DNA from: Adineta vaga
Lineage: Eukaryota; Animalia; Rotifera
Direction of reading: 5' to 3'
DNA length: 64,000 nucleotides
NCBI GenBank assembly: GCA_021613535.1
Contig: CP075492.1
Location: 8,370,001 to 8,434,000, forward strand
How positions within the stretch are numbered: the stretch's first letter is position 1; each line of letters starts with the position of its first letter. Positions 41,623 through 47,379 of this stretch are shown here, one piece after another. Under the pieces are notes generated by a model that saw nothing but the letters and a program-made list of their open reading frames with translations, searched no databases and was not told the DNA's origin. The translations under genes were made by a program, and so were the position numbers.

Positions 41623-44486
41623 GGGTTTCTTTCTTTTAAATTTATGTTAAAGGAAAAAAGCGTCTTGTCTACAGACAAAAAGAAGATGAGAAAGAGAGAG
41701 AAAATGCTGTATATATGTCCGCTTTGCGGTTGGTAATAGTTAGTAAAAAAAAAAGGAGAAAGAAGCAAAAGTCGACGCTGATGACGGCGACCAAAAGATA
41801 TATTAAGAAATGAAGGAGAGAACACGCGATGAAAATTTCTCCGGACAACTACTTTCTTTTGTCTTTCATTGACTAGAGTAACCACTATATGTGGTATGTG
41901 GTAGAGAGAAGATAGGAAGAAGAGAGACAGAGAAAGAGAGAAAGAGAAAAAAACGGGAAAGAAACGAACAAACAGCAAAGAGAAAGGATAATTAGCGGGC
42001 ACATCTAAAAAAAGACGAGAGAGAAAAAGAAACAGAAAGAGAGGTGAACTCGGTTTGGACGACACTCCAATCAGGAATTAGTGCGATGGGGCTCATTACA
42101 ACAGGTTTTCATCTTCTTCCTATTCTCTCTCTCTCTCTTTCTCATTTTTCTTATTCTCGCGCGCTTCCGCCTCATCGCTCCTGTTTGTATGCAGACTTAC
42201 ACGTTCGGTCAAGATAATAACGATGATGATGATGATGATGATGATGAAAAAAAGAAAGAAAGTATAGTGTGTTGAAGACACAACTGCAGCTAACTTTAAA
42301 ATAAATGTAACTATAACAACTGTTTAGAGTGCTCCTAGTTTTTTTTTGTTTCTGTAATAGAAAAAAAACGTACCTAATGCTCTGTCAAACTAGAGGAAAT
42401 GGCGATTGTCAAAAATTGTTAATAGTTACATTGATCGACATATTTGGCATTTAGCCAATATGTTTAAATGAATGATAGACAATATACAAATGGATAGACG
42501 AACAAACAAAAAACCAATATTAAGAAACTCTCGCTTTAAATGAAACATCTGCATAGTAATTATGCGAGGAATTTTAATAAAGAAAACAGAGTATTTAGAT
42601 ATAGTAACAATCGATCAATTGATTGTCCAACAGACCGGATAATGGTTATTATCATCATCTCTTCATATTTTTTCTACTTATCCCCTTTGAACATATTAAA
42701 CATGCTCATCTAGACGCTCTTCGTTATTCATTGAGGTCAACATCTAGCTCGTCTTTCTTTTTTTCCTTTTTTTTGCTCAAGCACATACAGACAAATATTG
42801 ACATTGTCGTTTTTGCTTTATATCGATTGTGATTATCACGAATAAAGCATGACCGTTGGCAGTATCAGTATTAATTGCTACTGCACATAAACTAAACTGA
42901 TAGTTAAATTGATATAAACGTTCTTTATCAATGTTTCCTGTTGTGAACTAATCATTCATGGTTGTTTCTTAATAATCAGTAATCGTTTCTTTTCTTTCCA
43001 TCTGTGCAAGAAATTCGCAACACGAACATATCTCTTTGTATAGCTTACAATAGACTTTATCAAAATATAGAATATGATCGATGGTATTACTATATATATA
43101 TATACTGTGGTTTAGCGCTATGTCATCCATCTGTCAATTTTTTCTTTGATAATGCCTCAATGGTATGATATATTCTAAGAATAACTAATCGGAAAAAAAT
43201 GCAGAGAAAAGAACAACAACAACTTTACCACCCACTGATATTGCATTTTTATATCTCTAAGGGGAATCTCATCTAATGATGATGATCATGCCTTTTCGTT
43301 TTGTTTTGTTTTGTTTACGTCGTGCTCTTATATAAATCATCAAAGGAGAGCGATAACCTTCTCTAACAGGTTTTCTCTTATGTACATATTGAAGACAAAG
43401 AGAGAGAGAGAGAGAGAGAAAATCAACTCATGTAAATTAACTTACTTGGTAGTATTTGTTTTTTTAATGAATGCAATTTCATCAGGCGACGTTGCCAAAA
43501 GATCTTTACGGTCGCTCATTTCGCGTTCCATTTATTTGGACAATAGAATGATCTGTCAAGTAAAATAAATAAGATGAAATTGAGAGAAATGAGACGATGA
43601 TGAAAGACGAGCTGTTTGTATCTCTTAAGTGGCTAGAAAACAACAGCTGGCATTGATGAGAAAAAAAACGAAGGAAGAAAGTGATGTCGTCTGTTGATCA
43701 AGGACTATCAAATTTAAGGATCACTTAGATGATGCCGGTTAAATGTAAATGAAGAAGATCTATTATTACTTACTTAATTATCTGATATTAATCTTCGTCT
43801 ATATATGTATATATTCTAAAATGAAATAGACAAGAAAATGACAATATAAAGAGACATATCTACACACACACACACGTTGATTAAATCAAACTACTGTCTT
43901 GCTTGTCTCTCGTCTTTTAAATGAACAGAGACATATGTATAGATCCTCGTGGATGTCGTTAATCAGTGAACAAAAAAAGAGCATTCATTTTTCTCTCATT
44001 TTCCGTTTATCCAATCAGTGAACAATTGTATTTGATATGATATGTATGTATGTTCATGTATAAAAGGGCACAAAGGAAACGAGGTCGATAACTAAACAAA
44101 CACATTTTCGTTGAAAAATAACGTTCAGATATACATGTGCGTGCATGCTTGTCGACGCCTTTAGTCTATCTACTACTGTTGACCTTCTCGTTTCTCCTTC
44201 GAGGCTAATACAAACGAAAGAAAGAAAAAGGAAATTGCTTTTGGATATGTACATATACACATCTGAATGTATGTTCGTTCAATGGCATATATATATATAT
44301 ATTGTTTGAAATATAAAAAGAAAACGAGTGAATTGACCAGATGTTGATTAATCACATATTCATTGAAAAGCAATGAGTCATAAGATTAAGGTACTTTCAT
44401 CAAAAATAAATATAAAGGTAAAAAAGTTCTGCATGATTGATTGTATATAAAATAGATGAGAAAAAAACATTCATGTGCATATTAGA

Positions 44487-45269
44487 ATGTTTTTTGCAAC
44501 AATCATTATTGGATTTTGTTTATTAATAACAATTGCTTGTCAAAGCAATAGTTATGATACATCATGCATATGTACACAAGCTTCGTCGAATGGAACATTT
44601 TGTTGGGCATGGAAATGTCGAACAGATCAAGTGACCAAATGTTTTCCTAATGATGCAACAGTTGAACTTATTGAGACACGTCAACGTATACCGATGAAAA
44701 ATTTAAATATAGGAGATCAAATACTTGTTGATATTGATCAGAATGGGCAACGTATCTATGAATCTATTTATGCTTTTATTCATGCAAGTGAAAATGGAAT
44801 ATATGATTATTTGAAAATAACTGTAGATAAGAATCTTGAACAACCATTGATTATTTCGAGTAATCATTTGATTTTTCGTTTTAATCAAACAAAACCATGT
44901 TTTGCTGGACATTTGGAAGTTGGTGATCAATTACAAATCATTTCAAAAGATAGTACATATCAAGCAGGGACTATTATAGATATCAGATTAATTAAAAGTC
45001 AAGGTTTCTATGCACCACTGACACGCAGTGGGAAATTATTTGTCGATGGTATTTTGGTTTCAAATTATGCACTTGTGGCTAATCATCAACTCGCTCATCT
45101 AGTTATACAACCATATCGATGGGGTATTCAACTTTTAGGATCATCATCATCGTATTCTGAACATATTCATTGGTATTGTCAAATTCTATATAACATGGTT
45201 GAAAAAATAAATAAATGGTTATTTTCAGTTGATCTTTATGATGGATATGTAACAGTTTCATACTTATAA
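44487..45269 (+). CDS. Secreted Hint/Hog-domain (hedgehog-related) autoprocessing precursor with a very short Cys-rich N-terminal peptide
   Basis: Intronless. Hydrophobic signal peptide, K|CFP start of Hint at 44640, LNIGDQIL, ISSNHLIF (TxxH-like), FAGHLEVGD, GFYAPLT..G..VDGILVSNYA, and sterol-recognition region HQLAH..PYR..HIHWY..L. TATATAAAA at ~44444. Confidence 0.9.
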   Translation: MFFATIIIGFCLLITIACQSNSYDTSCICTQASSNGTFCWAWKCRTDQVTKCFPNDATVELIETRQRIPMKNLNIGDQILVDIDQNGQRIYESIYAFIHASENGIYDYLKITVDKNLEQPLIISSNHLIFRFNQTKPCFAGHLEVGDQLQIISKDSTYQAGTIIDIRLIKSQGFYAPLTRSGKLFVDGILVSNYALVANHQLAHLVIQPYRWGIQLLGSSSSYSEHIHWYCQILYNMVEKINKWLFSVDLYDGYVTVSYL

Positions 45270-46246
45270 ACATTAATTTTCCACATATAACAGAAACTAT
45301 AGCACGCAGCCATACTTTTTTTTCTCTTCTATAAATAAATATTCCAATAAAAATCATCTTCGAATTTTTCGTACATTTATTTCAATATTATGATATGAAC
45401 GAATCGCTTATCTGATAGATGACGATTGTTTGATATGTGCATAGCAGAAGAGATCATTCGATAAAATCTGAATGTATTATTTGCTCCTCTATATCGTTGT
45501 TTTTTCTCTCCATTGACTTTCGGTATTTTTCACGGTCTAATTTTCATACGCCTTCCTTTCCGCACGGTTTACTCATTTTTATTTATGTTGTCATTTCTCG
45601 CTATGCAGATTCTTTCTTCCATTTGTTTGTACGATGAATATAATCATATTACTAGAATGTCTGAATGATATCTGGAATGATAACGGCTCTATACATTATT
45701 TGAATCAAAACGAAGCTTTTGCACATCAATAGATTTCTGATTCAGAAAGAATACCATATTTATCAATAATGAACAAACTCCTTAATTCACACATGAATTT
45801 CAAAATCGTTAGAATAATTTCATCAGTCTTTTTTGTGCATGTAATAAACATACTAAACTATCGTTTATGCAATTTCACTATTCCAACAGGATCGAATTTA
45901 TCGTTATATATATTGATACCAAAGTGTAACTAGTATTTGATCGATATAGGAAATCTTACATTCTTTGCATATGAACAAGATTTCATACTTTCTTAACAAC
46001 TCACTGTTTCATTTACATACGTTGCAATGATAGAAGATCTTTTTTTTGCTGTGACTATAACTAAAGATTGTATTACAAAAAATAAGGCTATTTTCTTAAG
46101 CGACATCTCCATGTTCATTCATCCATTGGTTACCATCATCAGTCAAGTAAACGGACGTATAGATATATATATTGATTCAACTCAAATCTACTTCTTTCTT
46201 GTATCAGCATAGTTCTCGGATTTCATCTTAGCTCAAATTGATATTG

Positions 46247-47379
46247 ATGTCAACAGAACATGAGCACACAGGTGTTTCAGCCAGTGATAACACAAATGCT
46301 GCTACTACTTATCACACAACTCATGGTAAATTATTTAAAAAAAGCGCTCGATTTCGGTTTTGTTTCCAACTAGTCATTTAGATATTGATCTCGATCTGCA
46401 AACGCAACAACAAAGTCAAATAGAAAATGAAGTATTAGAATGCTTTCTTTATTGTATGTCCAATAAATTTTTTTCTCACAGGTTGCCTTGAATCAACCGT
46501 TGATCAGTGAGAAAATTCCCTCAATACAATTACAAAATGAATATGCATCCGATGATAAAATTTATCAAGATAAAGTATCGGTAAGGATTCTTCTTGAATT
46601 TATAACCGATCAATTTGTTTCTTCACGTTCATAGGAATTAATTAAACGATATAAATATATTCGACGTACTCGTCGTGATGGTAATTGCTTTTATCGTGCA
46701 TTTGCATTTGGTTTTCTTGAAAAAAACCTAAACAATCAAAGTGAACTAGAACGATTTCGTCAATTAACCAATGATCTTAAAGATCAATTAGTAAAATTAG
46801 GATATTTAGAATTTACAGTTGAAGACGTTCGAGATATTGTTCTTGAAATTATTGATAATGTACGAAAGGAAGGAAGCGAAAGAAATCTCATAGAAAGTCT
46901 TTCATCATCAAATTATTCAGATTATTTTGTTGCATATTTACGGTAAATAAGAATATCTAGATGATTTTCAAACGATTATTCTCATATCTATTTCAAATAA
47001 TAGATTATTTACGTCTGCTTATTTACAAATGAATCGTGAATTCTTTGAGAATTTTATCGAAGATGGCAAAAATGTCAAACAATTTTGTAGTACTGTAAGT
47101 TTGCATTGTTCTTCGTCTATTATCAATCGAGACTTTTATTTTTTGTTTGTATTAAAGGAAGTAGAACCTATGGCACGTGAATCTGACAATATTCATATCA
47201 TAGCTTTAACTAAAGCAGCCCTTGTTCCTCTACGAGTGATCTATATGGATCGAAGTGAACAATCAACATTAACTACACATGATTTCGCAGCTCATGATGA
47301 TGAATCGAATGAAACATTCCAACCAATGATTACAATGCTGTATCGACCGGGACATTATGATCTTCTCTATGAAGACTAA
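46247..47379 (+). CDS. OTUB1: Otubain deubiquitinase
   Basis: YIRRTRRDGNCFYRAFAF, SDYFVAYLR|LFTS, EVEPMARESDNIHIIAL, MLYRPGHYDLLY. Confidence 0.93.

Follow-up and report, generated by a model that had tools for sequence, protein, structure and literature searches.

To our knowledge, Hog domains are the only enzymes known to attach a sterol to a protein. The Hedgehog active site comprises C1, D46, T69, H72 and C143 (PMC12054796), and cholesterolysis of human SHH requires H374, P379, R381, H433 and Y435 (PMC7242414). Hog proteins with very short N-terminal parts have also been described, with N-peptides of 34 residues in Trichinella Xhog3, 25 in Xiphinema Shog2 and 15 in Xiphinema Shog1 (Bürglin 2008, PMC2362128). 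Here, we analysed a single-exon gene of the bdelloid rotifer Adineta vaga located in a stretch of 64,000 nucleotides (the window; positions 8,370,001 to 8,434,000 of the forward strand of contig CP075492.1, assembly GCA_021613535.1). It encodes a precursor in which a hydrophobic N-terminal segment is followed by a 34-residue peptide with four conserved cysteines and then by a complete Hog domain, composed of a Hint module plus a sterol-recognition region (SRR). Our findings indicate that the peptide is a conserved module, predicted to fold as a hairpin, which the Hog domain would probably release with a lipid attached.

The Hog domain was assigned by sequence as well as by structure. Pfam PF01079 (Hint) matched residues 48-241 with 132.5 bits (cut-off 29.7; E = 2.1e-38), covering profile positions 9-211 of 213, and the only other Pfam matches, DrmE_C and Dna2_Rift, were sub-threshold and probably due to chance. 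The best sequence matches in the PDB were Drosophila Hh and human SHH, the alignment extending to SRR helix 1 and the HWY motif, and the similarity far exceeds what chance would give. We used an AlphaFold2 (AF2) model built from a 43-sequence alignment, with a predicted local distance difference test (pLDDT) value of 86 overall; it superseded an earlier run on 19 orthologs only (pLDDT 65.6), in which the peptide and the SRR were poorly modelled. In Foldseek searches the best matches were Drosophila Hh-C in its D46H (6TYY) and wild-type (1AT0) forms, with template modelling (TM) scores of 0.86-0.87 and root mean square deviations of 2.4-2.6 Å. BIL domains and inteins ranked next, the third-best structural match being the BIL2 domain of the Tetrahymena BUBL locus (PDB 6Y75/6TMM, C1A-N143A), and an ESM Atlas look-up returned Hint families only. 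The preliminary description of this DNA had placed a peptide of about 34 aa between a signal segment and a complete Hog domain, with the catalytic Cys at 44640 and an SxxH motif at 44856-44867 in a full Hint domain. This arrangement was confirmed, and all positions given for the signal segment, the peptide, the Cys, the SxxH and the SRR motifs were re-derived and found correct.

The catalytic residues were compared in 19 orthologs, the other members of which are 59-74% identical to the window protein, and in 123 other Hog representatives (those non-bdelloid ones that could be scored, a sample biased towards query-like sequences). C52 and F53 at the predicted cleavage site are invariant in the orthologs and in 24 diverse members. 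The window protein has His at the D46 site, as do 96 of the 123 representatives, and Ser for Thr in the TxxH motif, as do 70 of them; Asn at the C143 site is shared by 20. The residue before the catalytic Cys is K, R, T, V or H among the orthologs and Gly in only 23 of the 123. The Lys at -1 highlighted earlier as a departure from the usual Gly is therefore present but not notable, since non-Gly residues are ordinary in non-Hh Hogs. Moreover, an engineered D46H change keeps activity and widens sterol tolerance (PMC9163320), and the motif-J Cys, that is the C143 site, is Ser, Thr or Asp in plant/algal Hogs, from algae and mosses (Bürglin 2008, PMC2362128). These alignments place Lys at -1, His at the D46 site and Asn at the C143 site within natural Hog variation; as a combination, the active site is unusual, not unique.

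A grass-carp Desert hedgehog (P0024, 455 aa, Hedge domain present) also has Asn at C143, in the string FVDGVLVSNYA, and the window protein shares FVDG(V/I)LVSNYA with it. The D46 region of this fish protein reads FLHLDRE, with His in the D46 column of the profile alignment and Asp two residues later. As P0024 is a bona fide vertebrate Hedgehog, it appears doubtful that C143 is indispensable in all Hedgehogs.

The claim that a sterol-recognition region follows the Hint module also held. H204, P209, R211, H228 and Y230 correspond to the residues that SHH requires, and both the helix-loop-helix and the H..P.R and HWY residues are kept across the orthologs. Behind it, residues 250-260 (45234-45266) carry the C-terminal motif L-Y-D-G-x-[FV]-x-[VI]-S, which does not vary within the bdelloid clade and is lacking in Hedgehog; AF2 modelled this region with a pLDDT below 50.

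The N-peptide carries a net charge of about +1 and has no Pfam match at E ≤ 1, Hedge (PF01085) and Ground-like included. This agrees with the proposal that it is unrelated to Hedge or Ground domains; Wart, for which we know of no Pfam model, was not separately tested. The mean pairwise identity among the 19 orthologs was 0.61 for the N-peptide versus 0.72 for the Hint module. C27, C29, C39 and C44 are invariant in the orthologs, in five further paralogs of the same genome and in 24 diverse members. Indeed, when these 24 four-Cys Hog proteins were aligned (24-74% identity to the window protein), C52, F53 and H127 proved invariant along with the four cysteines. Three representatives (P0082, P0147 and P0154) have lost C27 and C44 jointly while keeping C29 and C39, a pattern that points to nested disulfides, C27-C44 and C29-C39. 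In the AF2 model, strands 25-32 and 39-46 form a hairpin (pLDDT 95 at residues 31-40) whose register sets C27 opposite C44. Given that the four cysteines are invariant, that C27 and C44 are lost together and that a hairpin is predicted, we conclude that the hairpin peptide is a selected module. In the hairpin loop, Asn-Gly occurs in 20 of the 43 aligned members and an N-x-S/T sequon in 22, so that the loop motif may be a glycan site or a turn; on these counts, NGT was rejected as a strictly conserved glycosylation site.

We then considered how widely this design occurs. In the genome assembly searched (100.8 Mb, six contigs), at least five further intronless paralogs were found (at least six genes in total), ~37-41% identical to the window protein and arranged as two tandem pairs (contigs 1 and 2) and one single gene (contig 3). 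Their common layout is [YF][DE]x[ST]-C-x-C-x7-9-C-x2-[YW]-x-C-x6-8, followed by C-F. A search with the 34-aa peptide alone recovered only itself and one paralog (E = 0.02) and missed four known paralogs, so it is too insensitive to bear on stand-alone copies of the peptide. Adineta steineri and Rotaria species supplied the closest proteins. When 1.8 billion representative proteins were searched with a profile, 6224 Hog proteins were returned and, among the best 150 of these, many non-bdelloid proteins carry the four-Cys motif directly before the catalytic Cys. Those that carry a name come from Rhodelphis marinus, Copromyxa protea (an amoebozoan), Plagiopyla frontata (a ciliate) and a transcript of a marine protist (MMETSP); most matches are unnamed metagenomic proteins, which makes the taxon sampling poor. 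A second profile search with the diverse alignment added almost nothing. The peptide is thus a conserved mini-domain common to a bdelloid multigene family and to protist Hog proteins.

A tree of Hog domains was inferred from 124 rows (quick search under LG+G4, with SH-aLRT as the only support measure; fragments below 165 aligned residues excluded). The bdelloid mini-Hogs form one clade (support 99) with two subfamilies; their weakly supported sister (91) includes diatom proteins, and the remaining four-Cys proteins are scattered on an unresolved backbone. Some bdelloid predictions deviate from the common layout. In other bdelloids, among Rotaria and metagenomic sequences, P0039 has Tyr for the catalytic Cys and is shortened, and P0029 has Cys-Cys for Cys-Phe and ends early, while the 98-aa Rotaria models P0190-P0194 stop after the first Hint strands; these cases may reflect pseudogenes or errors of gene prediction. 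In the Adineta ricciae model P0187 (424 aa), a complete mini-Hog is joined by a further Hog copy truncated at its N-terminus; the prediction has probably fused two genes of a tandem pair of the kind seen in the A. vaga genome.

The tandem pairs are informative about the boundary between peptide and Hog domain. In the pair L002/L006 (C1:15037186-15039585), nucleotide identity is ~40-50% upstream and 85-100% from the catalytic Cys codon onwards. Near-identity begins exactly at this codon and drops right after the stop, and the signal peptide, like the flanks, is diverged. The two Hog parts are 95.7% identical; the peptides agree by eye at ~8 of 28 positions, little beyond the Cys framework. The pair on contig 2 (L003, C2:1118864-1120892) shows a milder trend, 93% versus 70%. 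This points to homogenisation of the Hog module by gene conversion or to diversification of the cargo. In both cases, since identity jumps exactly at the Cys codon, the cleavage site also marks a boundary between evolutionary modules, in keeping with two separable products.

In contrast to this wealth of Hog domains, no Hedge domain was detected: PF01085 had no match at E ≤ 0.001 genome-wide in a six-frame, exon-by-exon search, by which absence cannot be proved. PF01079 matched 54 pieces of the genome, and Patched-family matches exist. A full-length fish Desert hedgehog query hit ~30 genomic places, through its Hog part only. This genome, with its dozens of Hog loci, may thus resemble that of Caenorhabditis elegans in having many Hog genes and no true Hedgehog.

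The gene model was examined with transcript-like contigs (five contigs from four runs of four studies), which contain no joints, indels, gaps or loose ends. Their 5' ends lie at 44477-44509, the 5'-most belonging to X5 (44477), and the longest, X14, stops at 45345. The flanks 43300-44463 and 45434-46200 had zero contig coverage in all four runs. The RNA nature of the runs is presumed from the coverage pattern over the open reading frame (ORF) only; this pattern looks like an RNA assembly of a monoexonic mRNA, and the gene is apparently expressed. Because the contigs are confined to 44477-45345 and have no joints, no splicing-in of an upstream exon is seen, in agreement with the single-exon gene proposed earlier, and a larger gene with upstream exons was rejected. 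The contigs contain variants causing five amino-acid changes (C18S, I28V, E102R, E144K and S156R) and two silent ones, none of them a stop or a frameshift, and the frame is thus intact in other strains or haplotypes. The coordinates of all features are collected in Table 1.

Table 1. Features of the A. vaga Hog-family gene and its surroundings, in window positions (AF2, AlphaFold2 model; res, residues; Dm, Drosophila Hh numbering)
Feature	Positions	Strand	Basis
TATA-like box TATATAAAA, putative promoter element, ~33 nt 5' of the first contig base (44477)	44444..44452	+	
Extent of transcript-like contigs (monoexonic mRNA, ~870 nt)	44477..45345	+	five contigs, four runs, four studies
Coding sequence of the Hog-family precursor, 260 codons plus stop	44487..45269	+	single exon; ATG 44487, stop 45267-45269
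Predicted signal peptide MFFATIIIGFCLLITIA, res 1-17	44487..44537	+	hydrophobic N-terminus; Thr at -3, Ala at -1; AF2 helix 2-17
N-peptide (cargo) CQSNSYDTSCICTQASSNGTFCWAWKCRTDQVTK, res 18-51, 34 aa, 3.8 kDa, pI ~7.8	44538..44639	+	translation
Cys18 codon (TGT), polymorphic Cys/Ser, unconserved	44538..44540	+	alignment and run variants
Four-Cys hairpin core C27-x-C29-x9-C39-x2-W42-x-C44	44565..44618	+	ortholog alignment, AF2
NGT sequon or Asn-Gly turn in the hairpin loop	44589..44597	+	sequence
Predicted autocleavage site K51 / C52-F53	44637..44645	+	aligns with G257/C258-F259 of Drosophila Hh
Hint module, res 52-196	44640..45074	+	Pfam; AF2 pLDDT 86-97; Foldseek
His99, at the site of general base D46 (Dm D303)	44781..44783	+	alignment; invariant in orthologs
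S124-x-x-H127, equivalent of TxxH (T69/H72)	44856..44867	+	alignment; both invariant in orthologs
Asn193, position of C143 (Dm C400)	45063..45065	+	ungapped alignment, VSNYA versus ASCYA; invariant in orthologs
SRR-like tail, res 197-260	45075..45266	+	AF2 helix 200-217, loop, helix 229-244; pLDDT 78-90
H228-W229-Y230 (HWY motif)	45168-45176	+	alignment to human SHH
AATAAA polyadenylation signal; second AATAAA at 45346-45351	45334..45339	+	adjoins the X14 contig end at 45345

Upstream of the coding sequence, an out-of-frame ATG at 44473 opens a 17-codon ORF (44473-44526), 4 nt before the first contig base; as it lies outside the 5'-most contig, it probably remains untranscribed. The closest neighbour that could be recognised is an ORF at 47029-47379 on the forward strand, which matches Peptidase_C65 (otubain; E = 3.7e-29) and is probably the last exon of a downstream gene. 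Base composition is uniform across the window (~30% GC).

Taken together, we consider it moderately probable that this bdelloid member of the Hog superfamily self-cleaves at K51/C52 and frees its hairpin peptide with a sterol-like lipid attached. The precursor would enter the endoplasmic reticulum, where the signal peptide would be removed near A17, and two nested disulfides, C27-C44 and C29-C39, would staple the hairpin, the loop of which may be N-glycosylated. Cys52 would attack the K51 carbonyl in an N-to-S acyl shift assisted by S124 and H127. The resulting thioester would be resolved by a lipid hydroxyl activated by His99, most probably that of a sterol held by the SRR. A peptide of 31-34 aa would thereby be freed with its C-terminal Lys esterified to the lipid, so as to stay on membranes, where it may serve as a signal or effector. 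Several observations weigh against this scheme. Asn193 stands in place of C143, whose changes to Ala or Asp abolish SHH processing in cells (PMC12054796), and with Asn at this site the branched-intermediate step proposed for Hh is impossible. The -1 residue is Lys, not Gly, and the position of F377 in SHH helix 1 is Ile or Met here. Cleavage of the signal peptide is deduced from a hydrophobic segment, comparable in all orthologs, and the RNA label on the runs is a guess.

These substitutions leave room for other outcomes at the same bond. If K51/C52 were cut but water or a small nucleophile other than a sterol resolved the thioester, the peptide would be free and soluble, and the Hog domain would be a self-removing pro-domain. 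The missing C143, the non-aromatic residue at the SHH F377 position and the C-terminal L-Y-D-G extension absent from Hh are compatible with such hydrolysis, as is the name 'adduct recognition region', which Bürglin gave to the tail of non-Hh Hogs since no adduct had been identified (PMC2362128). However, the residues of cholesterol transfer and the helix-loop-helix are kept in the orthologs, and would be needless for simple hydrolysis; we therefore regard this outcome as unlikely, if worth keeping in view. A complete loss of self-processing through Asn at C143 and Lys at -1, which would leave an intact ~27-kDa secreted or membrane-associated protein, is in line with the block of autoprocessing in the SHH C143A and C143D mutants, but seems improbable to us. 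The invariance of C52, S124, H127 and H99 in the orthologs suggests that the chemistry is still selected, and Asn occurs at the C143 site in other Hogs and in the bona fide fish Desert hedgehog, as do Ser, Thr or Asp at the motif-J Cys of plant/algal Hogs. Moreover, the conversion tract of the tandem paralogs starts exactly at the Cys codon, as would be expected for two separable products. We also weighed an intein-like second cut, in which Asn193 would cyclise and cleave N193/Y194, parting the Hint module from the SRR tail. Asn193 is invariant and closes the last Hint strand, and the Hint fold is common to inteins and BIL domains with a catalytic terminal Asn; residue 143 of BIL2 ('C1A-N143A') is presumably this Asn, which bears on the chemical activity of Asn193. 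Yet in published work it is the C+1 nucleophile of inteins, and not their terminal Asn, that is equated with C143 of Hh (PMC12054796); Ser instead of His occupies the penultimate position, and the same VSNYA motif is found in fish Desert hedgehog, all of which makes a second cut highly improbable.

The number of lipids and the origin of the gene raise two further alternatives. The preliminary description had suggested that signal-peptide cleavage would bare Cys18 for Hedgehog-like palmitoylation, yielding a doubly lipidated peptide, and the window copy does have a Cys directly behind the plausible A17 cleavage site. However, among the 19 orthologs Cys18 is found in the window copy only, the 18 others having Ser, Gly or Ala thereabouts, and the paralogs of the genome likewise lack it. 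Within the species, Cys18 is replaced by Ser (44539 G>C) in X5 and X14, that is in two of the four runs, and no CGPG-like HHAT context is present. Because Cys18 is unconserved among orthologs and polymorphic within the species, double lipidation is very unlikely and we rejected it. As for origin, the bdelloid mini-Hog clade could have been acquired horizontally from a protist and not from the animal Hedgehog lineage, a scenario compatible with the favoured mechanism. It would fit the six in-genome members being intronless open frames, the diatoms in the sister clade and the fact that, among the named sources, bdelloids are the only animals with the four-Cys design, which four protists have. 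On the other hand, the backbone of the tree is poorly supported (SH-aLRT 91 in a quick search, with many open forks), taxon sampling is poor with mostly unnamed metagenomic matches, animal Hh-C gives the best matches in both sequence and structure, and the base composition resembles that of the rest of the window. Horizontal acquisition is thus a tentative option that we think doubtful.

A 260-aa precursor with a 34-aa cargo is a compact test case, with a natural His46, Asn at C143 and a non-Gly -1 residue, for the generality of the Hedgehog branched-intermediate step and for the adduct used by non-Hedgehog Hogs. The hairpin cargo in rotifers, an amoebozoan, a ciliate and Rhodelphis points to an old pairing of Hog domain and cargo, undescribed in the literature searched. 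The hairpin peptide itself appears to be undescribed so far, and we did not find a description of the subfamily that this gene founds; no publication linking Hog domains with rotifers was found either, although our literature coverage was incomplete and this is absence of evidence only. As a speculative extension, four-Cys hairpin and Hog domain might form an ancient, eukaryote-wide maker of lipid-anchored mini-peptides that was expanded and diversified in bdelloids, with a conversion-homogenised Hog and diverging cargo, and whose sterol-tailed products would act as signals or surface effectors replacing Hedgehog ligands or beside them. A genome that appears to lack a Hedge domain and carries many Hog loci, much like that of C. 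elegans, which has no bona fide Hedgehog, is relevant to the evolution of Hedgehog signalling in Spiralia.

Compared with known systems, the window protein is closest to Hh-C and Hog domains (1AT0, 6TYY and human SHH-C), with which it shares the Hint fold, the Cys-Phe start, (T/S)xxH, a helix-loop-helix SRR with H..P.R and HWY, and a position directly behind a secreted N-terminal cargo. It differs in lacking a Hedge domain, in its cargo of only ~30 residues and its extra L-Y-D-G tail, and in having Lys for Gly at -1, His for Asp46 and Asn for Cys143. It is not a bona fide Hedgehog, as it contains no Hedge PF01085, no Gly-Cys-Phe site and no conserved N-terminal Cys. In Nema-Hog proteins, two internal cysteines are conserved as a pair and the K/L motifs have diverged, neither of which is seen here; beyond the catalytic Cys, the only cysteines of the Hog part, C138 and C231, are unconserved in the orthologs. 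Inteins and BIL domains end in His-Asn followed by Cys, Ser or Thr, whereas the window protein has Ser192-Asn193-Tyr194.

The Enoplea Hogs with short N-peptides are similar in outline, with a signal peptide, then only 15-34 residues (34 in the window protein), then Hog. Trichinella Xhog3, moreover, retains motifs K and L in a Hh-like form and has Ser, not Cys, at the C143 site. Calling the 'mini-hedgehog' a new architecture was therefore an overstatement, given the N-peptides already reported by Bürglin (2008). However, the Enoplea peptides are low-complexity linkers without C-x-C...C-x4-C and were not reported as a conserved family; the peptides of Ts Xhog3, XC Shog1 and XC Shog2 lack the four-Cys motif, and we rejected them as members of the same family. 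The dinoflagellate expressed sequence tag Alexandrium Hog2, from the supplement of the same paper, looks like a two-Cys version of the peptide motif, although it was not discussed in this way there.

The four-Cys Hogs of protists (P0059 of Rhodelphis marinus, P0171 of Copromyxa protea, P0105 of Plagiopyla frontata and P0162 from MMETSP) share the design, the length, the four cysteines and C-x2-W-x-C, with the catalytic Cys-Phe 4-10 residues after the hairpin motif. They differ in that identity is 24-34%, D46 is Asp or His and C143 is Cys, Ser or Ala, and the weakly resolved tree does not unite them in one clade with the bdelloid genes. Protegrin and tachyplesin are disulfide-stapled beta-hairpin peptides, and the short two-stranded hairpin with two nested cross-strand disulfides predicted for the cargo would resemble them in shape only. 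There is no sequence relation, the cargo is not highly cationic, with a charge of about +1, and it would be released by Hog autoprocessing and not by protease maturation. Finally, Warthog, Groundhog, Quahog, Lophohog, Hoglet and Enop likewise combine a lineage-specific secreted N-terminal domain with Hog and have expanded into multigene families; their N-terminal domains are distinct and much larger (Lophohog being set apart by description). A Hog autoprocessor joined to a lineage-specific secreted N-terminal domain is thus an established principle, to which the window gene adds a new small cargo.

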